Of a stretch of 64,000 bases of DNA, positions 1 through 12,373 are shown one piece after another. Made by a program: the position numbers and the translations under genes. Source of the DNA: Tetramitus jugosus (taxonomy: Eukaryota; Protista; Heterolobosea); contig OW569352.1 in assembly GCA_937625935.1 (NCBI GenBank), positions 1 through 64,000 of the forward strand, written 5' to 3'. Position 1 is the stretch's first letter. The number at the start of each line of letters is the position of its first letter. Below the pieces are notes generated by a model that was not told the origin of the DNA, made no database searches, and was given only the letters and a program-made list of their open reading frames with translations.

Positions 1-862
1 CAAACCCAAACCCAAACCCAAAACCCAAAACCAAACCCCAAACCCAAACCCAAAACCCAAACCCAAACCCAAACCCAAACCCAAAACCCAAACCAACCCA
101 ACCCCAAACCCAAACCCAAACCCAAACCCAAACCCAAACCCAAACCCAAACCCCAAACCCAAACCCAAACCCAAACCCAAACCCAAACCCAAACCCAAAC
201 CCAAACCCAAACCCAAACCCAAACCCAAACCCAAACCCAAACCCAAACCCAAACCCAAACCCAAACCCAAACCCAAACCCAAACCCAAACCCAAACCCAA
301 ACCCAAACCCAAACCCAAACCCAAACCCAAACCCAAACCCAAACCCAAACCCAAACCCAAACCCAAACCCAAACCCAAACCCAAACCCAAACCCAAACCC
401 AAACCCAAACCCAAACCCAAACCCAAACCCAAACCCAAACCCAAACCCAAACCCAAACCCAAACCCAAACCCAAACCCAAACCCAAACCCAAACCCAAAC
501 CCAAACCCAAACCCAAACCCAAACCCAAACCCAAACCCAAACCCAAACCCAAACCCAAACCCAAACCCAAACCCAAACCCAAACCCAAACCCAAACCCAA
601 ACCCAAACCCAAACCCAAACCCAAACCCAAACCCAAACCCAAACCCAAACCCAAACCCAAACCCAAACCCAAACCCAAACCCAAACCCAAACCCAAACCC
701 AAACCCAAACCCAAACCCAAACCCAAACCCAAACCCAAACCCAAACCCAAACCCAAACCCAAACCCAAACCCAAACCCAAACCCAAACCCAAACCCAAAC
801 CCAAACCCAAACCCAAACCCAAACCCAAACCCAAACCCAAACCCAAACCCAAACCCAAACCC
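1..862 (+). repeat. Telomere, (CCCAAA)n = (TTTGGG)n on the G-strand
   Basis: Near-perfect 6-bp tandem array at the contig start, C-rich strand 5'. Length variants occur only in the first ~150 bp. Confidence 0.97.
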
Positions 863-939
863 ATGTAAATAACTTCAGAACCAATAGATAACGAACAGAT
901 ATGATAATTTTGACGTAGAAATGCTCTGAGTCCTGAACA

Positions 940-1175
940 GTCAAAAAGAAAAAAGGTTGGGTAAGGGTTTATACACTGGTTGGAGGAGAAGTCAACCCTA
1001 AATGTACTTTTGACATAATTAGTTCGCGATTCAACAGAGATTCAATTGAAGATTCATTGAATGACTACAGAGTCCCCTACGACCTATTCTGTAGATATAC
1101 AATCAAAAAGTAAAAAAGGGTGGGATTTGGGTTTATATGCTGGTTGGAGGTCGATGCAACCGAAATCTGCTTTTC
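940..1175 (+). repeat. Degenerate subtelomeric repeat, two units ~162 bp apart with a GG-rich telomere-like core
   Basis: gtcaaaaagaaaaaaggttgggtaagggtttatacactggttggagg (~940) aligns with atcaaaaagtaaaaaaagggtgggatttgggtttatatgctggttggagg (~1102). Related cores occur at ~2521, ~2693, 3218 and inverted at ~1595-1625. Confidence 0.6.
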
Positions 1176-1710
1176 AACAGAAGCACTTGCACTTTAGTAC
1201 AGATAGATCAGAAAGACATCAAATCAAACTACTTAAAAATCAGGTTGCGGCGTATCTATAAATCGTAATTAGTAGTCACAGATCATGATCAAGACAAAAT
1301 ATAGTTAACTATTGACTGCCATTGTATTTCAGGTTGAACTCCTTCACAAGTCTTCTGTTATATTCATGTTGCTGTATTGTATTCCTTCTGAATTCGTTGT
1401 AATCACTTCGCTCATTGGTCGAAATTCTTTGCTGGATCCAAAAAGCTCCACTGACAAATGACCTGAGATGAAATACAGGAAATCATTTCACGGTCCTGGA
1501 CCGTGAACCTCCCTGTTCGTTGAACCTCAATATCTCCGATCTGATAATAGACTCCAAAATCCATTCAACCCTTGTCCTATATGTCTTCTTTTTACTCCCT
1601 CAACCTATAAGCCACAACTCAACCGAACTAAATTTTGTTTTTACACTAAACTGTAAATTTCAACGCTCTGATACCAAATACAGCTAAATTCTCGGGTTTT
1701 CCTTAACAAC

Positions 1711-1956
1711 AAGACAGACCCAAACCCATCAAAAACCCAACGCAAAAGGAAGTTTTTGACGGAAAAGGAGTCCGTTGAAGCCGAATGGGCTAAACGTTAC
1801 AAAACTCCTGCACAGTCCATTGACTGGGAGAGCCAAAGTGACAATACAACTCCTGCATCTAAAAGAGTGAGAGATGCAGGAAGATGTGTCCTTGATAGGC
1901 CTACCAAACATGTCAAACGTCGTAAACTCGACAGTATGGACTACAAGTGGTATTGA
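1711..1956 (+). pseudogene. Small basic ORF with NLS-like KRRK, copy A (no upstream ATG)
   Basis: Reads ..DPNPSKTQRKRKFLTEKESVEAEWAKR..SKRVRD..KRRKLDSMDYKWY*, homologous to 4009-4311. In-frame stop at 1669-1671 and no ATG before the conserved part. Confidence 0.55.
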
Positions 1957-1977
1957 CCGGAGTTGTGGAGAACCGGA

Positions 1978-2244
1978 ATCGTACGGGGTATGATCCGGAG
2001 ATCCTGAAATTGCCCTACGGGCAATTTCACAACACACGTGTCCCTCAACAAGTTTGTGCAGGGCAGTTGACCTGCACTTTACTATAAAATAAAAAAATCT
2101 GTGTGCACTGTGCATTGTTTAGGCACCGCACCGGAATTGCGCCCAGCCCGAATATTGTTTGCGCAATACTGCACACTATTATAACAACAACAACATCTCA
2201 CTCACCACTCCAGCACCCCATAGTTAGTGTTTGAACCCAAACCC
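1978..2244 (+). ncRNA. Structured 3' RNA of the element, copy A
   Basis: Hairpins at 1978-1994, 2005-2029, 2056-2077 and 2101-2176, with compensatory changes relative to copy B. Confidence 0.65.
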
Positions 2245-2259
2245 AAACCCAAACCCAAA
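2234..2259 (+). repeat. Interstitial telomeric repeats at an element junction
   Basis: aa(cccaaa)x4. Confidence 0.9.
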
Positions 2260-3217
2260 TTTACTTTCTTCTCAAAAATCTAAAATTTCATCCAAATTCC
2301 AAACATAATCGATCTATCATCTGAAAAATGGTCCATCAATATCTATCCAAGTTAAAATCACTCGATTCTTTCCTACTTGCATCTCTTGATCCTCATTCCT
2401 TAGTCTTTGTCGAAAACCAATAGTTTCATCAAATGCTCAACGTCTGAAAGGACTAGAGGCAATCAAGTGAGTCAACACATGTGTTATGAGCAATTATTTC
2501 TATCACACTGAAGTTATGAAGGGTGGGTCTGGGTATTCAACTCTGCACTCAAGGAATTCTGAACAATAGAAATATAATTCTCTCATGAGCTCATCTCCCT
2601 CCTAAATAGTATTTTCTGCAACCTTTCTCAGTCAATTACGTCCATAGATATACTTTCTTATTCAACAAGAGTAACTACACTTGATATATGAGGCGTTGGA
2701 TCTGGGACTTCAGCTCTGCATTCATATGACAAACTAAAACGTTTAGATCTCATTCTGTCAGTAAAAACTGTCAAAAAGTCCTTCTCCAGAATGAAACATC
2801 GCATTCATAATCATCAGTTCTCATAAATCGGTTGACTTCTCCATTTCAAAAGAATTTCAAGTCATTCCAAAGTTAAAGCACTGAAACCCAACTCATTCTG
2901 CCAAAAATCAACAAAAAGTTATAGAAATTAGAGAATGAACGCTCCAAATGCACACCAGGTCAGTCCAAAATCTGAAACAACTGTTCTCTAATCTGACAGT
3001 CCAGTCAATCATATACTTCTAAAAATCACTGTCAGAAACAATCTGTTGCAGTTTTAACCATTTTGCAGAGAAAAATTGTTCAATACAGTAGAGATAGATC
3101 GTCTCCTCAAGACGATACTTCTCAAATTTCGGTAAAAATACTGCCACACTGTTCCGTACTGTCAGCTGAAGCCGCCAGTACTCTCAAAACTCAAAAATAA
3201 AAATCGGAATAATTGTC

Positions 3218-3273
3218 GGGTTGGGTATGGGTTTACCAAAACGCGGATGTAACACCAAACCCAAACCCAACCC
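3218..3273. repeat. Inverted repeat of telomere-like arms (16 of 17 bp paired)
   Basis: gggttgggtatgggttt (3218-3234) versus aaacccaaacccaaccc (3257-3273). Confidence 0.75.
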
Positions 3274-3892
3274 CTGGATCTGCACATCCAATTGGAAAAA
3301 TACTACGTGAACTATGCAGTTCCATTATGGCGCTTTTGCTTCAATGTTTACCAGAAACCATTGAACAAGTACATGTACTCCATGTACAAATCAGCGTCTT
3401 CCTTTGCAGCAAGGAAAGGTTTTATCACGGGTGAGTTGGTGAGATACGCTCGCCTTGTTGATCATTTCAAACAATTTGATTCAATGCGAACATTGTTTGC
3501 CTCTCGGCTAAGAAGAAGAGGATATGACCACCACTTCGTACAACGAATGTTCACAAAGAACAATTACTTTGCACTCGTTGAACGATACTGCAAACCTATT
3601 GACTGGCAAGCTAGAGTGAACAAGTACCAACAAAAGTTGGACTTGCAACACAAACCAAACATTCCACCAATTTGGAAAGTGTTACACTCTGGCAGTGGCA
3701 TCAATTATCGACAATTGATCAATGCCATTTCTCTCTTCAATGAGATTGATTTGCCAAAGGAATTGGTCATTTGCAAATGTCATACTTCCCAACATCAGAG
3801 AAGTGCTGCACACATGCAAAACCAAATTCAACACTTGGGTGCAACAATGTGATCCAATGCCAAACGAAGATAAAAAGAAGCTAGGAAACTAA
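3274..3892 (+). pseudogene. C-terminal fragment of a Penelope-like reverse transcriptase
   Basis: LDLHI..VYQKPLNKYMY..KGFITGELVRYARL..FASRLRRRGY is the characteristic PLE motif-7/thumb signature. A probable frameshift near 3787 leads into PNIREVL..KKLGN*. No GIY-YIG or HNH domain follows. Confidence 0.8.
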
Positions 3893-4008
3893 TGGACGTT
3901 GTTGTTGGTAATCACAAACGTCGTTGGTAGCGTACTTCATTTGCTGCACAACGACTGATCCGATCATTTTCGGAAAGGGGAAGTGGTTATTCAACAATTC
4001 GACGGCAG

Positions 4009-4311
4009 TTGCAGTTGCGACTTCGCAAAACATCACGCGGGTGCGTGATGCTGACGAAGTCAGCAACGCGCCCGATCCCAAACCCACCCAAGACCCAGAA
4101 CAAGAGGTACTTGAGTGAAAAGGAGGCTGTCGAAGCCGCAATGGCTAAAAGACAGAAAGCAACTCCTTCACAGTCCACATGGGACTCCTGCAATGTGAAT
4201 ACAACTGTTGTATCTAAGAGAGTGAGAGATACAACAGGTTGCACATTAATGCAGAGTGCACCCCGCATCAAGAAACGCAAACTTGACAGCATGGACTACA
4301 AGTGGTACTGA
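4009..4311 (+). CDS. Small basic ORF with NLS-like KKRK, copy B (first ATG at 4048)
   Basis: Protein-level conservation with copy A and an identical C-terminal KLDSMDYKWY*. Confidence 0.5.
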   Translation: MQLRLRKTSRGCVMLTKSATRPIPNPPKTQNKRYLSEKEAVEAAMAKRQKATPSQSTWDSCNVNTTVVSKRVRDTTGCTLMQSAPRIKKRKLDSMDYKWY

Positions 4312-4334
4312 ACCACGAGGAATGTAGTGGATAA

Positions 4335-4644
4335 CCGTACGGGGTACGGCTCCAACTGCAATGACAATTCGCCAACGGCCAATTGAAATGGTCCTACGGA
4401 CCATTTAATTGGCCCAATGGGCAATTGCAACCTTCCGAGGTTCAAAACTTTTGTGCAGGGCAGTTGACCTGCACTTTTAGTATAAATAATAATGTTGTGG
4501 TGTAGAGTGCTCATGTTTAGGCACCGCACTAGATTTGCGTCCAGCCCGAATACCTGTGTTGCACGTAAATATATCACAACTAACAACAACAACATCTCAC
4601 TCACCACTCTCAAGCCCCATAGTGGAGTGTTTGAACCCAAACCC
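4335..4644 (+). ncRNA. Structured 3' RNA of the element, copy B
   Basis: Hairpins at 4335-4349, 4386-4406, 4453-4474 and 4494-4580, then a CA-rich linker and terminal aacccaaaccc. Confidence 0.65.
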
Positions 4645-4669
4645 TACCCTGGCAAGATGATGAATCTGG

Positions 4670-5199
4670 GTGGAAGAACCAACGGAAAATATTTCAGATA
4701 ATATCGAGGAAATAAACAACAGGCTGCAGAGAGGACGCGGAGCTTGTGTGATGGTTGAGGGTACACCACAGTACAGACGAGTCAATCGCATGGGAAGGAT
4801 TTTACCAATGCCTGACCTCGTTCCTGGAACATTCGTCGCAACAAGTTCCACCTTTGAAGAAAGACTTCAAGCTTTGGAAAGTCTATCCACCCTCGGAATT
4901 GCACCGAACACTTCGAAAATAAGAGAATATGCCGAACGGAACTATCTGATGTTCTGGGAGGACATGTGTCTGGATAAGAACTTCAAGGCCTATCAATCAG
5001 AGCCATTTCCGATCAAGAAGGTAACTTTTCTCATGTTCCTGTTCTCTATGAGGGTGGAGCCGAGATACAGCTACAAGACCGTGAGGGATACATTTGCTAA
5101 TAGCCTGAGCAATCACCTTAGGGACACCAACAGGGGAATCCAAAGGGTGACTATGGTCTGGATATTTCAAATTTTCTCAGAGCTCTGTTGAGAAAATAG
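4670..5199 (+). pseudogene. N-terminal (core-binding/SAM-like) fragment of a tyrosine recombinase, DIRS/Crypton-like
   Basis: GIAPNTSKIREYAERNYLMF..PFPIKKVTFLMFL..YSYKTVR matches the pattern of eukaryotic YR N-termini. Frameshift near 5135 and no catalytic domain. Confidence 0.5.
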
Positions 5200-5758
5200 A
5201 AGCATATTCTGCCACTCACTTAGTTGAGAGATACTACGAGGAAAATATGAAAACATTATTATAAAGTCTGAAAAAGAAAAAAACAAGGTTGCTAGAGACA
5301 CAACTAACCTATCCTACGGCAACTTTAAACTAATGTGTAACAACCTGAAGAGAAAACGAGAAGTCCAAATTCAGAGAGCAGAAGAAAAATACAGCAAGGA
5401 AAAGGAAAGGTTCAAGGCAAAGTTCGCTCATAGTGAATTCTTCCGAAGGGATCAAGTCAAGCTTGCCGCGAGCTCTGCTAGTCAAATCGTCGATTGATGT
5501 TGAATAATCTATGTTGTTCTTCAAGAACGATAAGTCGTTGTTGTTGATGCTGAGTGCAACTTGATTTTCTAGATCCTCATCGTCCGATGAATGACATGAT
5601 CAACAATTTAAATGTTGTCTTTTGGATATCCAAAACATAGACCTCATGTGATACGAACTCTGATATAAACACACAATCCGGGTGATTTTTCCACAATTCA
5701 GATTCCTATTCAAGTAGTTCTCCTTGATGAATCCATCCGTTGGCAACAGATCGTTCAG

Positions 5759-6431
5759 TCATGAATCCTTTTGCGACAATACACTGAATCTTTGTAAACG
5801 AACTGTGAGTTCTCTCCTGCACAAGCAAATGATAGCACGAAAGAGTGAAATACATTCGGGTCTCGAATGTGTACAAATGTAATTGTACTCAGCAGGTAAT
5901 TCTGACAGACACAAGTTTGCGCTATTTAAAGCAACATTTCGTCGGATATTAACCATAGTTGTTCAGGGAACATGACTTTTTGACGAACAGTATCTCTCTA
6001 GATACTTCAATGACGGTATAAATCAGAAAAGACTTGATAGAACTCACTGCTTCACTTGGGACGGTTCGGTTGAGACTGTCCAAGTAGAGAATAAATATGT
6101 CTTTGATATCCAAGTTACACACAGCTAGCAGTACCCAGTGATGTTGGAGACAAAAAGGAAAAAGAATTAATCTTCTCTCAAAGATTTTATCTCCTTTTCT
6201 GATTCTTTCTGCGCATCGGGCTAGGTCGTATGTCATTAGTTTCGTTTCTTGTGCTGTTAGGACCATTGTCCGCTGGCGATCTACATTCCTCCCAAGATAC
6301 AATAATCTACAGTCTATGATCTGGTCATTTAATTCTGTTCCCTCTTCCAGTGCTTGACTATCCTTCTCGTAGAATGATATACTGTACGCTTCAAAAAGGG
6401 GTTTATCAGAAGTTTCTTCCACTACTATCAC
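5759..6431 (-). pseudogene. Ulp1/SENP-like C48 cysteine protease relic
   Basis: LILFPFCLQHHWVLLAV..ILYLDSL supplies the His and Asp motifs. The frame breaks before an intact QxxxxDCG. Confidence 0.65.
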
Positions 6432-8635
6432 CTTATGATGAGGTGTTGTTGAAGGTGTTTTGGCATCTCGTTTCCTCTTCTTTGGAGTGGTAGGGTCCGG
6501 TGTACATTTTTTTGGTGTTTCGTTCGATGATGAACCTTCATGAATGTGTATGTTTGCTCTTGGGGTTTGAGAGTCTTGATTCTGAGAACTGAGACTATTG
6601 TTACGTAAAAAATCTTCTAGACGACCACTTTGTCTTGATGATTGCCCAGTGTGCTTAGACTGTGTTCATTGAGAAAAACTGCAACTTCATGAGTGTCGGT
6701 GTGTTCAAACTACATTTCTAGTAATGAATTTATGTTTAAAGCAGTTACATAATTAACTCTAAAAGTTAGTTTGGATTTCAATTTTTGTTCTCAGGACACG
6801 GAAAAAGGACAAAGTTGCGGTCCCACCAATTATTCGAATTACCTCTGTCTATTTAAGAATTTCAATTCAAGATAAGAGAGAAAGTGCTGAGAAAAATTGT
6901 GAGATGGATGCTGCTAGACTAAACGCGAATTCAGTAGGACAATGTTCATTGACAACAAATTCAGGAGCATGTTCTCTAGCTGCAGTATGAGCTACTTGTG
7001 CAGTGTCTGCTTTCGAAAACAGGATTCATCAGAGGTTCAACTTTGAACTTATCATTGAGTATTCTTGATTTCAGGAGGGAATTCGAATTAAAGATGCCTT
7101 CTTCCTTCCATCAGAAACATCTCCAAGAGCATCGTTGTTACACCCAAAGCTCTATTACTTCTGGGTGATGGAGCGCAAATTTCTTTGGTATTTCTCCGGT
7201 ATTTCTCGTAAATCTGTTATTTACAAGATTTAATGGAATTGTTGTAGTAGTTAGTATCGTAAGAATCGGTGCAGTATTGAAGAATATTATCGAAACAAAC
7301 AATCAAGTGAGGCTCAAAGGAGATTCGAATTGAAAGAATCTGCGGATCCTCTTCAACTCATCAAAAGAATGATGGTATGTCTGTCTGATCTGAGATTCTT
7401 TTGGAGGAGTTGGTATTCATTCAGGTCAATATTTGGTTCAAACACTCACCCCAAATGTCACATAGCACTCTATCTTGTCTACATTCGATTATAAACCATA
7501 ATTTTTTCCGCCCCTGGTGAAAATTGTTTTGATGACAACCAACCACATTTTGAAAAATTTTTACACACAACAAACGAATACAGACAAGACTCCAACGTTC
7601 ACGTAAATCAACATAGTATTGTCTTCTCGGTCAGGCACACTTCCTATACTGGTTTCGCCTTCATCAAAAGAAGGAGGTCGTTGAAGAAGAAGTGCTCTGG
7701 AAGTTATGTAATTCAGCTTTGGACACCCTCCCTAGTGGTATGGGTCAGTATCAATGTTACTGGAACAATTACTATGGAGGGGACAAATTGAATCTGGATA
7801 CCGTGAAGAGAGCCTATGGTACAAAAGGTACCGCTAGATCAAACAGAACGATCTCATTATTCAAGGAGAGTACCATGAACCTTATGCTCATGAAGGCCTC
7901 AAGTTATTCAGTTGTTTGCTCTCAGAGGGCAAGAGGAGAACAGATTTGGCTGTGTGTCGTGGAAGGATAATGGTTCCCAGCCAACGAATTTTTACTCCTG
8001 GGTCATACAAAATGAACATGGTGAATCAGAAACCTAATCATCGCAATGCTTCTTGGAGGCGCTGTTGTTTTTTATGCTTTGTTGAAGATGGTGTTCATAA
8101 ACAGTTGGGTCTATTACATTTATGTATGTGCAAAAACAGATAGAGAGTTGCAGGCATCCTATACCAAGACTTTCTTTGTCCGAATTATCTGAGGATTATG
8201 CAAAATTCAAAAGGAATGAGGTCAAATTACGTGAGGAGAAGAGGAAAAGAAAGAACAGAGAGAGAATGAGAGTGAAAAGAAGCCAGGAACAGCTTCAGAT
8301 TCTGCGGTCTCTCCTTGGTTGACCCCGAAAACTGGTTTCCTTTTTCGTTTGAATGATTGTGGGTCAAACACAATTTCTTCGAAATCTCCGCTCAAAAATT
8401 TCTCAAAAACCGAAATCACGCATATCATTATATCATTGTGATAAAATCCAATCTCCATCTGCACCCAAGCACAGCTTCCACTGTGTTTCTAGAAAAATTC
8501 GGAGTAATTATTAGCACCAGAAAGTATCTACGTTTGAATTCGAAAGTCAAATGTGAGATTGATGTGACAGAGAGTAACTGTGGTGATTTTGGTTAACACT
8601 TGTGGCAAAAACAAACACAACATAATTTCACAACA

Positions 8636-11600
8636 ATGAAAGAGAGTCAATGGTCGTTTTATCGAACAATTCAACTGTGGTACAATCGATGCACATTCGC
8701 AATAGTGAATCCCCTGTTTGACATTGCAAAGAAGCGTGCTGTCACAATGGAAGATGTTAATTTGAATTTATATCCTGATGGCTCATTCATTCAATATGAT
8801 ATGAAATCAGTGAGCAGACAGATGGAAGATAACTATTGGAAATCTGGAGGCTCTTTGATGAAAGCATTTGGTACAATCAGTCTGCAATACTATGCAATGA
8901 TTGTGGTGAGACTAATGATTAATGTGATGCAAATAGCAACACCTGTGATGCTCAGTAGATTAGTACGAGTATATGAAGAGAATGACAATCCAGATCTATG
9001 GACCAGCTTGTGGTACTGTGGACTGTGTCTGGTATTGAAACTGGCAACATCATCTTTGAACAGTCTGTTCTGGGTCAAAATGCTTGCTATCACAAAGAGT
9101 ATTGAATCTGGAATCAACTCAACGATCTATAACAAAGTATTGAGACTCAGCTCAAAATCAAGAGGTGAGAAGAGTGCTGGAGAAATTCTTAATTTATTAT
9201 CAGATTCAGATAGAATTGTACAAACGTTGTATGACTTCCAGAACGTGTGGTCATCAGTGTTCAACATTACATCATTGATGTATTTGTTGTATGGATATAT
9301 CGGTAAGGCTGTATTTGCTGGAGTAGTGATGGTATTCCTATTGAGTGTGCCCAACTATTACATGGTGAAAAGATCTGTGACAATCTCCGATCAGCTAACA
9401 GATATGAGAGATGCTAGATCAAAGGTCGTCACAGATATGTTATCATCCATCCGTGTCATCAAGATGTTCGTGTGGGAACGATTGTATTCTGACAAGTTGT
9501 CACAATTGAAGAAGAAGGAAGATGAAGTGAACTACAGCGCTGAGGTTATATCTGGAGTTCAAGGGTTCATGTGGAGTTGTGTGCCATTCCTTTCTGGTGC
9601 CTCTTGTTTGATCTGGTATGCTGTTATCTCTGGACAACAATTGAGTAACTCTTTGATATTTGCTGTGCTGGAAATGGTTAATTCATTGAATGTAGATTTC
9701 CAGTGTTTACCTAGCTCTATCCATACAATCGTGGAATCAAGACTAGTTATCAAGAGATTAAGATCATTCTTGGACATGGAAGAAATAGAAATTGTACCAA
9801 GAATTCCAATGGATTCAGTGGACATCAAGTTCTCAAATGCATCCTTTGGATGGACCAGTGACAAGAAATTCTTGAATGACATTGATCTGGAGATTAAGAA
9901 GGGACAGTTTGTCGCAATTGTTGGTGGTGTTGGATCAGGTAAAAGTTCCATGTTGTCTGCAATACTGGGAGAAATACAACGATTGGATGGTTCAATCAGT
10001 GTGAACCAAAATAGAAAGGTAGCTTATGTTGAACAGTCTCCATTCATTAGAAGTCTCTCTCTGAAGAATAATATTTTATTTGGTTCCAAATTTGACAAAA
10101 CCAGATACCAACAAGTACTGTCAGTGACTACTCTGGATGAAGATTTGCCACAATTAGTTAATGGTGATAATACAATGATTGGAGAGAAGGGAGTAAATCT
10201 GAGTGGTGGCCAAAAGCTTCGTTGTAGCTTAGCAAGAGGATTGTACTCCAACTCAGATATATACTTGCTTGATGATCCATTAGCTGCAGTGGATTACAAG
10301 GTGGGAGAACATATATTTGATCATGCTATCTGTGGATATCTATCTGGTAAGACTCGAGTACTTGTGACAAATCAAGTTCAGTACTTGAAGAAGGCAGATG
10401 CAATTATTGTGATGAAGAATGGATCCATACAGGAAAAAGGCACCTACGAAGAGCTCGTCAACAAAAGTGATTCTGAATTCAAGACTCTCATGGATCTAAC
10501 TACTACTAATATCACTCACAGATCGTCTGCGACACAAGAACAACGAGAAGACGATGACGCTGTTCCAGATGTAGAGAGCGAACCTGATGAAGAGGGATCA
10601 GATGAATCAGATGATGACACAGATGTGTACAAAGAAGATGCCAATACCTTCAAGAAGATCAGCATACTGGTACAGTACGTTACCTCATTTAGCTGGATAT
10701 GGTTCATTGCATTCGTTGCCATCTCTATGGCCAAGACTGGATTCATGCTACTATCTGACTACTTCGTAGCATCATGGAGCTCTGATTCTGCACTGGTGAA
10801 CCATTCTACTCTGTTCTACTGTGGATTCTATTTAATATTTGGATTATCACATTTGCTGTGCTCTCTGTTGAATAGTTTACTTGGAGTTCATATTAGTTTG
10901 AAGGCTGCAGAGCAATTGCATTCAAAACTGTTGAATAGAATTTTGTCTGCCACTACTACATTCTTCGATGTGACACCATGTGGAAGACTGATGAGAGCAT
11001 TTGGAAAGGATGTACTCACACTGGATTCAGAGATACCATGGAAGATCAGTTCCTTGTTTAACTCAATTGGAGTTACAGGTCTCAGTCTGGGAGCAGTTCT
11101 GTTGTATGCTGGACCATCATTTCTCATCTATGCATCACCACTGCTATATATTGTATGGGTGTTACAGAACAAGTACAGATCTGCAGCTGTAGATAACATA
11201 CAGTCAGAGATCAGCTCCAATTGCTACTCCTACTTCTCAGAGACTCTGAATGGATGTGTCACAATTCGTGCATATTCTGAACAGGAACAATTCAAGAGAG
11301 AGAACATTCAGAACATTCAGAATGATGCAGATATTAATATTGTGTCACAAGTGACTAGTGCTTGGTTCAGTATTAGGATGGGTTGTATTCGGTCGTTGAT
11401 GCTATGTGTTGGATGTATTATGATTAGTCAATCATCAACAACAGCTGTGACAGCAGTATTGGTAATTCGAAATTTACTATGTTTCACCGATGAGATACAG
11501 TGGCTATTGGAGGTGCTATCTTATCTGGATCCAAACGCTCGATGCTTACAGAGAATGAAAAGACTCAGTGAACAGAGTCCAGTGGAACACTATCAGAGAG

Positions 11601-12373
11601 AAGTAGTGTCACAATCAACAGAAACCAGAGGACATATAGTGTTTGAGAACGTCACAATGAACTATGTGAACGATACTGAACCTGCTCTGAATGGTATCAG
11701 TCTAGAGATTAAGCCTGGAGAGAAGATTGGAGTTGCTGGAAGAACTGGATCAGGCAAGAGTTCTCTATTCGCTGTACTATTGAGACTATATGAACTATCA
11801 TCTGGTAGAATACGAATTGATGGTCAAGATATAAGTAAGATGTCACTGGAACAATTGAGAAGGATGGTAGCAATCATTCCACAAGATCCAATTCTATTGA
11901 GTGGAAGTACACTAAGACAGAATCTGGATCCATACAATGAACACTCAGATGAAGCTATCTGGCAAGCTCTAGAGAAGGTCTGTATGAAGGAGAGAGTGAC
12001 ACTGGCAGATGACAAGCTGTCACTATTGATTGCAGAGAATGGAAGAAACTTTTCACAGGGAGAGAGACAATTGCTATGCATGGCAAGAACACTACTGTTG
12101 ATGATGAAGTCACAAAATCCAATACGTGTGTTACTCATGGATGAAGTATCTGCTAGTGTTGATCTAAAGACTGATTCCATCATTAAGCAAACTGTGAAGA
12201 AGTACTTTGTGGAATGCACTGTCCTATCTATCGCTCATCGATTGGATCACTTGATCAAATTCTCTGATCGTATGTTGGTGTTGGCAGCTGGTAGAGTAGG
12301 TGCATTTGATGATGTAGATAAGATATTGCATTCCTCTTCTGAACAGACTGAGCAGATCCCACTTCTGGAATAA
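8636..12373 (+). CDS. ABC transporter, ABCC/MRP family (TMD-NBD-TMD-NBD)
   Basis: Walker A GGVGSGKS and GRTGSGKS, signatures LSGGQK and FSQGERQ, YLLDDPLAAVD, FFDVTPCGR. First ATG at 8636. Confidence 0.95.
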   Translation: MKESQWSFYRTIQLWYNRCTFAIVNPLFDIAKKRAVTMEDVNLNLYPDGSFIQYDMKSVSRQMEDNYWKSGGSLMKAFGTISLQYYAMIVVRLMINVMQIATPVMLSRLVRVYEENDNPDLWTSLWYCGLCLVLKLATSSLNSLFWVKMLAITKSIESGINSTIYNKVLRLSSKSRGEKSAGEILNLLSDSDRIVQTLYDFQNVWSSVFNITSLMYLLYGYIGKAVFAGVVMVFLLSVPNYYMVKRSVTISDQLTDMRDARSKVVTDMLSSIRVIKMFVWERLYSDKLSQLKKKEDEVNYSAEVISGVQGFMWSCVPFLSGASCLIWYAVISGQQLSNSLIFAVLEMVNSLNVDFQCLPSSIHTIVESRLVIKRLRSFLDMEEIEIVPRIPMDSVDIKFSNASFGWTSDKKFLNDIDLEIKKGQFVAIVGGVGSGKSSMLSAILGEIQRLDGSISVNQNRKVAYVEQSPFIRSLSLKNNILFGSKFDKTRYQQVLSVTTLDEDLPQLVNGDNTMIGEKGVNLSGGQKLRCSLARGLYSNSDIYLLDDPLAAVDYKVGEHIFDHAICGYLSGKTRVLVTNQVQYLKKADAIIVMKNGSIQEKGTYEELVNKSDSEFKTLMDLTTTNITHRSSATQEQREDDDAVPDVESEPDEEGSDESDDDTDVYKEDANTFKKISILVQYVTSFSWIWFIAFVAISMAKTGFMLLSDYFVASWSSDSALVNHSTLFYCGFYLIFGLSHLLCSLLNSLLGVHISLKAAEQLHSKLLNRILSATTTFFDVTPCGRLMRAFGKDVLTLDSEIPWKISSLFNSIGVTGLSLGAVLLYAGPSFLIYASPLLYIVWVLQNKYRSAAVDNIQSEISSNCYSYFSETLNGCVTIRAYSEQEQFKRENIQNIQNDADINIVSQVTSAWFSIRMGCIRSLMLCVGCIMISQSSTTAVTAVLVIRNLLCFTDEIQWLLEVLSYLDPNARCLQRMKRLSEQSPVEHYQREVVSQSTETRGHIVFENVTMNYVNDTEPALNGISLEIKPGEKIGVAGRTGSGKSSLFAVLLRLYELSSGRIRIDGQDISKMSLEQLRRMVAIIPQDPILLSGSTLRQNLDPYNEHSDEAIWQALEKVCMKERVTLADDKLSLLIAENGRNFSQGERQLLCMARTLLLMMKSQNPIRVLLMDEVSASVDLKTDSIIKQTVKKYFVECTVLSIAHRLDHLIKFSDRMLVLAAGRVGAFDDVDKILHSSSEQTEQIPLLE

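Follow-up and report, generated by a model that had tools for sequence, protein, structure and literature searches.

Our analysis of a protist chromosome end revealed that the 3.8 kb directly below the telomere form a head-to-tail stack of four pieces, two of them broken copies of a Penelope-like element (PLE) and two of them non-coding units. The end was probably extended outward, unit by unit, through terminal retrotransposition of an endonuclease (EN)-deficient PLE. This reading rests on the anatomy of the stack, on the PLE identity of its reverse transcriptase (RT) and the lack of any nuclease domain, on where the copies lie at chromosome ends and how they are oriented, on independent recent copies at further ends and on the presence of a gene for telomerase reverse transcriptase (TERT). 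Among living elements, EN-deficient PLEs are most closely related to telomerase, whose possible origin from a retroelement is usually modelled on them, and the well-resolved examples come from rotifers and fungi. The element described here is a further EN-deficient PLE of the known Athena/Coprina-like kind; chromosome-end building of this type is already known from rotifers and fungi, and the present case adds a clean example but no new principle.

The features of the window (the whole stretch of 64,000 nucleotides that was analysed) are listed in Table 1. All units of the chain lie in one and the same orientation, and their borders are short C-strand telomeric runs at 2234-2259, which ends in (CCCAAA)4, at 3255-3273 (CCAAACCCAAACCCAACCC) and at 4634-4644 (AACCCAAACCC). 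The positions previously assigned to the telomere and to the tails at 2259, 3273 and 4644 were all verified. In a scan of the 64 kb, the 11-mer AACCCAAACCC was found outside the terminal tract at the three unit borders only, always on the plus strand, and had no match in the remaining 59 kb, where 0.05 matches would be expected by chance. An end-by-end map, drawn from 16 ends and genome-wide search tables, showed a terminal (CCCAAA)n tract of 700-870 bp at 16/16 chromosome-sized contig ends inspected. These 16 ends also contained 26 interstitial telomeric runs, all in the C-strand orientation and none inverted.

Table 1. Features of the telomere-proximal part of the window
Feature	Position	Strand	Remarks
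Terminal telomere, C-strand (CCCAAA)n	1-863	+	~143 repeats (TRF)
Non-coding terminal unit, family C, 5′-truncated	864-1728	+	851 bp plus CCCAAACCC tail; outermost, presumably youngest
3′ piece of a divergent PLE subfamily, 5′-truncated	1719-2259	+	Starts from the telomere-like tract inside the element
Non-coding terminal unit, family A, full-length, 1014 bp	2260-3273	+	Fold-back hairpin at its end
PLE copy, 5′-truncated, decayed	3274-4644	+	92% identical to master positions 3660-5044
ORF2 remnant (RT motif E, thumb, C-terminal extension)	3274-4311	+	Within the decayed PLE copy
3′UTR of the decayed PLE copy	4312-4633	+	
Tail of the decayed PLE copy	4634-4644	+	
Internal telomere-like tract CCCAAACCCACCC in ORF2	4077-4089	+	Preceded by two hairpins; recurrent start of shortened copies
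Older subtelomere, outside the chain	4645-8500		Base onto which the chain would have been built
ORF in the older subtelomere	4670-5191		
Ulp1 peptidase relic in the older subtelomere	5949-6431	-	

The outermost, family C unit has 100% identical copies at the right ends of C9, C3 and C39, a longer relative of 1505 bp at the left end of C49 and at least 12 further 5′-truncated copies that keep the 3′ end. Its borders at 863 and 1728 were confirmed by loose ends in contigs assembled from other samples. The adjoining PLE piece contains a C-terminal remnant of ORF2 (1756-1956) that terminates in KLDSMDYKWY and a stop codon, a 3′UTR and the (CCCAAA)4 tail (2236-2259). Compared with the last 79 codons of the intact element described below, it is stop-free and 70-80% identical in nucleotides and 57% in amino acids, and other fragments of this divergent subfamily lie on C22 and C8. 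The first-pass annotation had placed a single unit before 2259; the position of its tail stands, but what precedes it consists of the non-coding unit at 864-1728 with its own CCCAAACCC tail and of the PLE-derived piece at 1719-2259.

The family A unit ends in a hairpin (3218-3273; -25.9 kcal/mol, z -3.0), the 3′ arm of which is the telomere-complementary tail. A genome-wide search gave 85 matches to this family, and essentially all of them lie no more than about 3 kb from a contig end, on the plus strand at left ends and on the minus strand at right ends; its 5′ start is defined, and its first bases lie directly below the telomere at about 33 ends. Neither 864-1728 nor 2260-3273 has coding capacity or shares PLE sequence apart from the telomeric tail, and the view that all units of the chain are PLE retroelements is not supported for two of the four.

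In the decayed PLE copy, the frame from 3274 reads LDLHIQLEKYY where the intact copy has ...NNVFLDLHIQLEKYY. The cut at the LDLxI motif is seen as described earlier, yet it is just the point at which this copy was truncated, other copies being cut at positions 2560, 2834, 3264 and 4470 of the intact element. Pieces that start exactly at the internal telomere-like tract are joined to telomeric repeats at the left end of C3 (665) and the right end of C10 (1853), and to the family C tail in the window (1719), which holds two homologous 3′ modules (1719-2259 and 4083-4644). A Pfam search with the window's ORF fragments gave no match.

The genome contains a single full-length copy (the master, 5.05 kb) and, as anticipated, it is terminal, at the right end of C10, and carries no GIY-YIG domain. 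Upstream of the master lies an identical 3′ piece of 574 bp, which constitutes a flanking direct repeat. ORF1 (322 aa) is basic and predicted to be helical; in a model from the single sequence (pLDDT 62), three long helices (16-197) are predicted to be followed by a basic disordered tail, and a PHROGs search with ORF1 gave no match. By sequence reading, ORF2 (1232 aa) lies in the -1 frame relative to ORF1, with an overlap of ~90 nt that includes an A-run. It carries the PLE RT motifs DKN, LPKVHK..GRPIV, D..LYTN, Q..G.PMG, RYIDD, FLD and YQKPLN, of which DK, LPKVHK..GRPIV, D..Y, Q..G..MG, R..DD, LD and K are invariant in an alignment of 40 homologues. RVT_1 was the sole Pfam match in ORF2, a weak one (E value of 1.5e-4), and a putative NLS-like KKRK motif was spotted by eye. 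A conserved C-terminal extension adds a further ~160 aa, ends in MDYKWY and is predicted by the AlphaFold model to be mostly disordered. Downstream, the 3′UTR contains a conserved TATA-like box, and the 3′ end of every copy reads ...GTTTGAA followed by 1.5 to 6.5 CCCAAA units.

The RT, hairpin spacer and small ORF, initially described as an unrecognised 3′ architecture, are one continuous ORF2 in intact copies. In the window the RT and the small ORF look separate because the copy is broken by an insertion of 1 nt near 3775, a deletion of 7 nt near 3880 and a stop codon (TAG) at 3928. We rejected the small ORF as a separate micro-protein gene, since it is the in-frame C-terminus of ORF2; a protein from another species, 43% identical, is colinear with the whole stretch as far as the last residues, MDYKWY. 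The hairpin spacer was likewise rejected as primarily an RNA element because the stretch is coding and its amino acids are conserved across species.

That the RT fragment groups with PLEs was upheld by its motifs, its homologues and its place on the tree, and the RT belongs to an endonuclease-less PLE. There were 110 homologues with the PLE-associated families PF28514/PF26215, the nearest named ones being Puccinia "reverse transcriptases". On the tree, the element forms a clade (100) with P0001 and P0002, outside the GIY-YIG-bearing clade (99) and outside the clade with Puccinia and Phenoliferia proteins, the backbone of this tree being unresolved and free of labelled Athena, Coprina, Neptune, Naiad and Chlamys references. 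The sister group (P0068, P0078) lies in animal-like contigs among LTR elements and is uninformative. With the AlphaFold model of ORF2 (pLDDT 81.6), a Foldseek search of the PDB gave TERTs as matches 1-6 and 8-11, with DRT2, R2, LINE-1 and group II RTs ranking lower, and TM-scores of just 0.3-0.45; this supports, but does not prove, that the modelled RT is closest to TERT among reverse transcriptases. The absence of an endonuclease after the RT thumb extends to the intact copy, as Pfam searches (E ≤ 1) of the N-terminal 470 aa and C-terminal 229 aa of ORF2 gave no match of any kind; the GIY-YIG loci of the genome, on C16 and C42 only, are away from any copy. The element does coexist with telomerase, as suggested earlier: TERT is encoded by a separate gene on C31.

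PLE copies lie on the plus strand at the left ends of C3, C17, C9, C35, C28 and C49 and on the minus strand at the right ends of C10, C48, C9 and C30. The claim of a terminal location and fixed orientation holds overwhelmingly, the copies being 5′-truncated and bordered by telomeric repeats, with the 5′ end telomere-ward, but not absolutely. Of two exceptions, one is a decayed copy in the interior of C50 (at 168-170 kb in a contig of 329 kb) and the other a fragment that lies inverted at the right end of C29. At least five recent copies besides the master, 99.5-100% identical to it, are found at four ends (C3, C10, C17 and C48). They start at master positions 2560, 2834, 3264 and 4470 (twice), carry tails of 1.5 to 6.5 repeats and adjoin inner flanks of four kinds; we read them as independent retrotransposition events and count them in favour of the best explanation.

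The "structured tail" proposed for the element received weak support. As single sequences, the last 140-150 nt fold no better than shuffled sequences (z -0.6 to -1.7). RNAalifold, run on five sequences of which three are near-identical, placed a few compensatory pairs in hairpins at alignment columns 39-53, 161-182 and 232-258, but its covariation term was positive. No hammerhead or other ribozyme was found by Rfam (E ≤ 1) in window positions 1-8000 or in the 10-kb master locus, and the CUGANGA-helix II-GAAA core was absent from the seven ends scanned. A few CUGANGA boxes were inspected and rejected as hammerheads; very divergent variants could escape such searches. An Rfam match to Gut-1 at 4359-4430 scored 28.6 bits against a threshold of 50 and was dismissed as chance, arising from three small tandem hairpins.

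Collectively, these data suggest the following course. Where a chromosome end is exposed, the few CCCAAA repeats that close the PLE RNA would pair with the 3′ TTTGGG overhang, which would serve as primer; the TERT-like RT would extend the overhang with the RNA as template, often halting early, and the new end would be recapped by telomerase or by the tail of the next unit. In the window, the innermost and presumably oldest event would have added the PLE copy truncated inside the RT (3274-4644), followed by the full-length 1-kb non-coding unit (2260-3273), the short PLE piece from the internal telomere-like tract (1719-2259) and, outermost, the truncated non-coding unit (864-1728) that bears the 860-bp telomere. 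Many copies of the non-coding units are 3′-intact and 5′-truncated, as the PLE copies are, and the chances that the PLE RT mobilises them in trans seem about equal either way. By analogy with Drosophila HeT-A, a promoter in the 3′UTR might drive the next element inward. A far-reaching extension, which we put forward tentatively and hold to be rather doubtful, concerns the ~1-1.5 kb non-coding units found directly below the telomere at most of the ~104 chromosome ends. These would be non-autonomous partners that the PLE RT copies onto the ends, with the telomeric fold-back tail replacing the hammerhead of other telomeric PLEs. Every subtelomere would then be built and renewed by ribozyme-free terminal retrotransposition together with telomerase, in an old association shared with the species of the 43% identical PLE.

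Several observations go against terminal retrotransposition as the source of the whole chain. Published telomeric PLEs have a hammerhead adjoining the tail, whereas the searches described above found none here, and the C50 and C29 exceptions, the single full-length copy and the lack of an RNA run with the element add to this. The truncated 851-bp tip unit, shared by four ends at 100% identity with different inner flanks, is better fitted by recombination than by four independent reverse transcriptions; end-to-end copying, by break-induced replication (BIR) or gene conversion, best accounts for it and presumably contributes. Likewise, a homogenised subtelomeric repeat would give a full-length family A unit in the same position at ~33 ends. 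These two patterns, and the fact that the units are non-coding and have only the telomeric tail in common with the PLE, are what one would see if just the two PLE pieces were retro-derived and 864-1728 and 2260-3273 were ordinary telomere-associated repeats spread by BIR or gene conversion from short telomeric tracts. We regard this as possible but not likely: many non-coding copies keep the 3′ tail while their 5′ cuts vary (pieces of 416, 298 and 211 bp; family C starts at 109, 421, 438, 489, 538, 580, 657, 745 and elsewhere), although terminal erosion and healing could also truncate them. Moreover, a defined 5′ start of TCAAC/TCGAC type follows straight after telomeric repeats, and the order in which the families are stacked varies from end to end.

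The decay of the window copies (92% identity, frameshifts and a stop), the internal and inverted copies and the lack of an RNA run would also suit an extinct PLE, with the whole chain produced by recombination between subtelomeres, by chromosome healing and by ends that fused long ago, the interstitial telomeric runs being relics and no terminal retrotransposition being recent. This is improbable in view of the intact master and its near-identical copies with varied truncations, tails and flanks, and fusions would yield inverted runs, whereas 26/26 share one orientation. Even less credible is a mis-joining of telomere-near repeats into an artificial chain by the assembly. The region is indeed built of repeat families, and its support consists of short assembled contigs, none of which spans the whole stretch; however, error-free contigs from an independent run cover 1719-2098, 2269-2553 and 4616-5234, and the window units, being 90-92% identical to their nearest relatives, are divergent enough to be effectively unique. 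In addition, the same architecture was seen at all 16 ends examined and again in a contig from a different species (L037), where a unit tail and CCAAACCCAAACCCAACCC lie directly upstream of a 5′-truncated PLE.

Terminal retrotransposition of an EN-deficient PLE would align this end with several known systems. Coprina elements, such as Coprina-1_Alen of Ascochyta lentis, are EN-deficient PLEs of fungi that have also been reported from a diatom, a clubmoss and a shrimp (PMC13159263). With Coprina and Athena, the present element shares two ORFs, DKN, an NLS-like motif (here seen by eye) and the thumb, as well as direct repeats on its flanks and telomeric repeats on either side (PMC13159263, PMC8557442). 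Like Coprina, it sits at the very chromosome ends, has a helical or coiled ORF1 (here as modelled helices), KKRK, DKN, RT1-7 and a thumb but no GIY-YIG, and its nearest named homologues are the Puccinia and Phenoliferia proteins. Unlike Coprina, it falls outside the fungal clade on the tree, in its own clade with P0001 and P0002, bears the ~160-aa extension ending in MDYKWY, has no detected hammerhead and resides in a protist with a TTTGGG telomere. The Athena elements and Terminons of bdelloid rotifers also have two ORFs with a possible frameshift between them and work beside telomerase (PMC6431247, PMC8557442). Athena likewise has a short reverse-complement telomeric stretch at its 3′ end after a terminal fold, but that fold is a hammerhead ribozyme, undetectable here. 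A giant multi-ORF organisation is absent from the present element.

The Drosophila HeT-A/TART/TAHRE elements similarly form head-to-tail terminal arrays with 3′ ends centromere-ward and variable 5′ truncation (PMC5537684), include an RT-less partner relying on another element's RT, as may be the case here, and are driven by a promoter that the next unit outward carries at its 3′ end, a role that the TATA-like box might play here. They differ in their LINE-like RT class and poly(A) tails and in a host without telomerase; the present genome retains TERT and long TTTGGG tracts. HeT-A also encodes Gag, while the companion units encode nothing. TERT, which gave the best structural matches to the RT model, is primed by the 3′ end of a chromosome and reads a C-rich RNA, as the element would; the element has no TEN/RBD domains and, in place of repeated rounds on a short template, would copy its own RNA over kilobases. 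Retrozymes and other non-autonomous PLE partners are non-coding too and have been proposed to be mobilised by PLE RTs (bioRxiv 10.64898/2026.07.22.740005), but the defining features of retrozymes, hammerhead ribozymes and circular RNAs, are not those of the units here, which have none and which end in a telomeric fold-back and are strictly terminal.

The telomere-to-telomere protist assembly displays the whole system at base resolution, with one intact master, dated daughters at several ends, a telomere-like tract within the element for landing or capping, and non-coding companions at almost all ends. In this small genome, the choice of template tail by the RT, the need for a ribozyme and the division of work among retro-addition, telomerase and end-to-end recombination are directly testable. 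Among the papers searched, the TTTGGG telomere was linked with a PLE in one review only. A search of sequencing runs for the element's words returned no RNA run among the matches; these words occur in groundwater, soil and hot-spring metagenomes.

The stack of units beneath the telomere at the left end of contig C9 is a real telomere-attached chain built around an endonuclease (EN)-deficient Penelope-like retroelement (PLE), and the first-pass annotation had recognized it correctly: the copies, with few exceptions terminal, oriented and truncated, carry no nuclease. The kind of system is known; the host lineage is new, and some of the traits are particular to it. The assembly comprises 26.35 Mb in 56 contigs, with C9 accounting for 612,711 bp, and a (CCCAAA)n tract of 700-870 bp starts all 16 chromosome-sized contig ends inspected. 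The telomere and the short C-strand telomeric runs inward of it were recovered exactly where they had been annotated. The runs do bound units, as had been proposed, but these number four rather than three, the first being composed of two (see the table). In other loci and other samples, a different sequence follows position 1728, the end of the family C unit. Outside the telomere and these three runs, the 11-mer AACCCAAACCC had no match in the 64 kb and none on the opposite strand, with 0.05 matches expected by chance.

Features of the terminal chain and its surroundings (window coordinates unless a contig is named)
Feature	Position	Remark
(CCCAAA)n telomere	1-863	
Family C non-coding unit with own tail	864-1728	5′-truncated; longer form (1505 bp) at the C49 left end
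851-bp tip unit, 100% identical copies	864-1714; C9:611088-611938(-); C3:685778-686628(-); C39:444205-445055(-)	
PLE piece of a divergent subfamily, 5′-truncated	1719-2259	begins in PLE-internal tract CCCAAACCC..., overlapping the family C tail
Family A non-coding unit, full-length	2260-3273	1014 bp
Truncated PLE copy	3274-4644	
Older subtelomere with unrelated relics	from 4645 inward	
C-strand telomeric runs	2234-2259; 3255-3273; 4634-4644	
TATA-like box	4477-4490; 2078-2092	equivalents in L021 and L037; alignment A1 columns ~190-205
173-aa ORF	4670-5191 (+)	no Pfam match
Ulp1 relic	5949-6431 (-)	Peptidase_C48, E 1.6e-7
ABC transporter, 1257 aa, intronless	8600-12373 (+)	two ABC_membrane and two ABC_tran domains

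The six-frame search of the assembly with the reverse transcriptase (RT) fragment (3274-3852), a check suggested by the annotation, found relatives almost only close to contig ends and recovered an intact copy of about 5.05 kb at the C10 right end (locus L021), here referred to as the master. Its ORF1 (322 aa) is predicted to consist of three long helices and, after them, a basic, disordered tail rich in R/S/K/P. ORF2 (1232 aa) lies in the -1 frame relative to ORF1 and overlaps it by about 90 nt (L021 6599-6692, minus strand); this overlap starts with the A-run CGAAAAAAAG, a candidate slippery site that could yield a Gag-Pol-like fusion. A 343-nt 3′UTR terminates in ...GTTTGAA(CCCAAA)n. The motifs DKN, LPKVHK..GRPIV, A-C (RYIDD), FLD and YQKPLN were invariant in a 40-sequence alignment, the 110 database homologues of ORF2 carry the PLE-associated Pfam families PF28514/PF26215, and the AlphaFold model of residues 470-1232 (pLDDT 81.6) found its best PDB matches among telomerase catalytic subunits; ORF2 is therefore a PLE RT. 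Its nearest named homologues are Puccinia and Phenoliferia proteins. In an RT tree rooted on the genome's own telomerase reverse transcriptase (TERT), the element formed one group with the homologues P0001 and P0002 (support 100), outside the GIY-YIG-bearing clade (support 99) and outside the clade with the fungal proteins. Since the backbone of this tree is unresolved and it contains no labelled Athena or Coprina references, we refer to the element as an EN-deficient PLE without assigning it to a clade. Groundwater and soil metagenomes contain about half of the element's 31-mers (L021 2500-8200), and hot-spring metagenomes about a quarter, which places the host, or close relatives with the element, in these habitats.

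The predicted lack of an endonuclease was borne out not only by the tree, as Pfam detected no nuclease domain in ORF2 and the two GIY-YIG loci of the genome both lie elsewhere. ORF2 has 383 residues after YxDD, where most EN-minus homologues have about 215-250 and EN-plus ones about 360-380, and disorder is predicted for its last ~130 residues, which are basic; on these grounds, the C-terminal extension is a real lineage feature and not a nuclease. The 3′ architecture of RT, hairpin spacer and small ORF, which had been claimed as novel, did not withstand comparison with the master, where RT thumb, "spacer" and "small ORF" constitute a single reading frame. P0001 of another species (GCA_037189345.1), 43% identical at the protein level, is colinear with ORF2 through the whole stretch and shares its final residues SMDYKWY. 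In the window copy, which shares 92% identity with the master, an extra nucleotide near 3775, the loss of 7 nt near 3880 and a TAG at 3928 interrupt the frame and together create the look of an RT stop, a spacer and a micro-ORF. We therefore rejected the separate reading; judged by these alignments, the supposedly novel architecture arose from annotating a decayed copy.

The C3 left, C17 left, C48 right and C10 right ends carry copies with 99.5-100% identity to the master. Because they differ in their start points (master positions 2560, 2834, 3264 and, twice, 4470), in tail length (1.5 to 6.5 repeats) and in inner flank (four different sequences), they bear the sequence signature of independent 3′-primed copying events and not of block duplication. 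PLE copies lie on the + strand at left ends and on the - strand at right ends, and all 26 interstitial telomeric runs at the 16 ends are C-strand oriented. Three short PLE pieces begin exactly at the element's internal telomere-like tract, two of them joined directly to telomeric repeats. In a contig of the other species (L037), a unit tail containing a G-rich stretch precedes CCAAACCCAAACCCAACCC, which in turn is followed by a 5′-truncated PLE; this is the same arrangement. The anticipated terminal location and fixed orientation thus hold for nearly all copies, with two exceptions. A decayed copy on C50 (168443-169761; L018 6444-7761), with about 165 kb of contig on either side, carries stops, has lost internal sequence between YIDD and QKPLN and terminates in AACCCAAACCC; it may have inserted at an internal break or be left over from a former chromosome end. 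At the C29 right end (L035), a fragment in reverse orientation (ORF2 aa 407-699; 83% identity to the master) lies about 1.7-2.6 kb inward of the telomere and likely reflects a subtelomeric inversion. C31 encodes a TERT with a telomerase RNA-binding domain, so the PLE system runs beside telomerase, as had been proposed.

Of the 85 matches to family A, essentially all are in the expected orientation and no more than about 3 kb from a contig end; at about 33 ends the telomere is followed immediately by the first bases of the unit. The 43 matches of family C have at least 12 different 5′ start points and nearly all the same 3′ end base. Full units start with a conserved TCAAC/TCGAC-type sequence right after telomeric repeats, and shorter pieces (416, 298 and 211 bp) correspond exactly to their 3′ portions. 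These sequence features fit non-autonomous retro-units, although erosion followed by healing would also truncate the units at their 5′ ends; the chances that the PLE RT mobilizes them are roughly even. End-to-end copying probably also operates, since the identical truncated tip unit lies directly under the telomere at four ends, namely both C9 ends, the C3 right end and the C39 right end. The inner flanks of these four units differ, and the identity points to recent break-induced replication (BIR) or gene conversion. Many units have a tail that folds back, its C-rich sequence pairing with a G-rich telomere-like stretch (for 3218-3273, -25.9 kcal/mol, z -3.0). Such fold-backs occur in at least eight tail types (many units, other ends) and in the second species (L037 104-149); the PLE's own tail lacks one.

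Published telomeric PLEs carry a hammerhead ribozyme beside the tail (PMC8557442, PMC6431247, PMC4209133), whereas Rfam (E<=1) detected none in the window (1-8000) or the master locus, and a core-motif scan of seven ends likewise gave none. Conserved blocks are present in the PLE 3′UTR; all subfamilies and the other species have a TATA-like box, TATAAATAATAA, which follows a conserved hairpin and lies about 165 nt upstream of the tail. Just upstream of the master lies an identical 574-bp copy of its own 3′ end, which resembles PLE pseudo-LTRs. This arrangement suggests a possible HeT-A-like promoter that would sit in the outward neighbour and drive the next element inward; the box together with the upstream piece may constitute either a pseudo-LTR or such a promoter.

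Just inside the chain lie the 173-aa ORF and the Ulp1 relic, and pieces related to this region occur at other subtelomeres (C9R, C17L, C48R and C52L). The ABC transporter is the first clearly intact gene further inward. The assembly probably includes the mitochondrial genome twice, as contigs C54 and C56 (L032, L034), each 49,460 bp, AT-rich, without a telomere and with the same start sequence.
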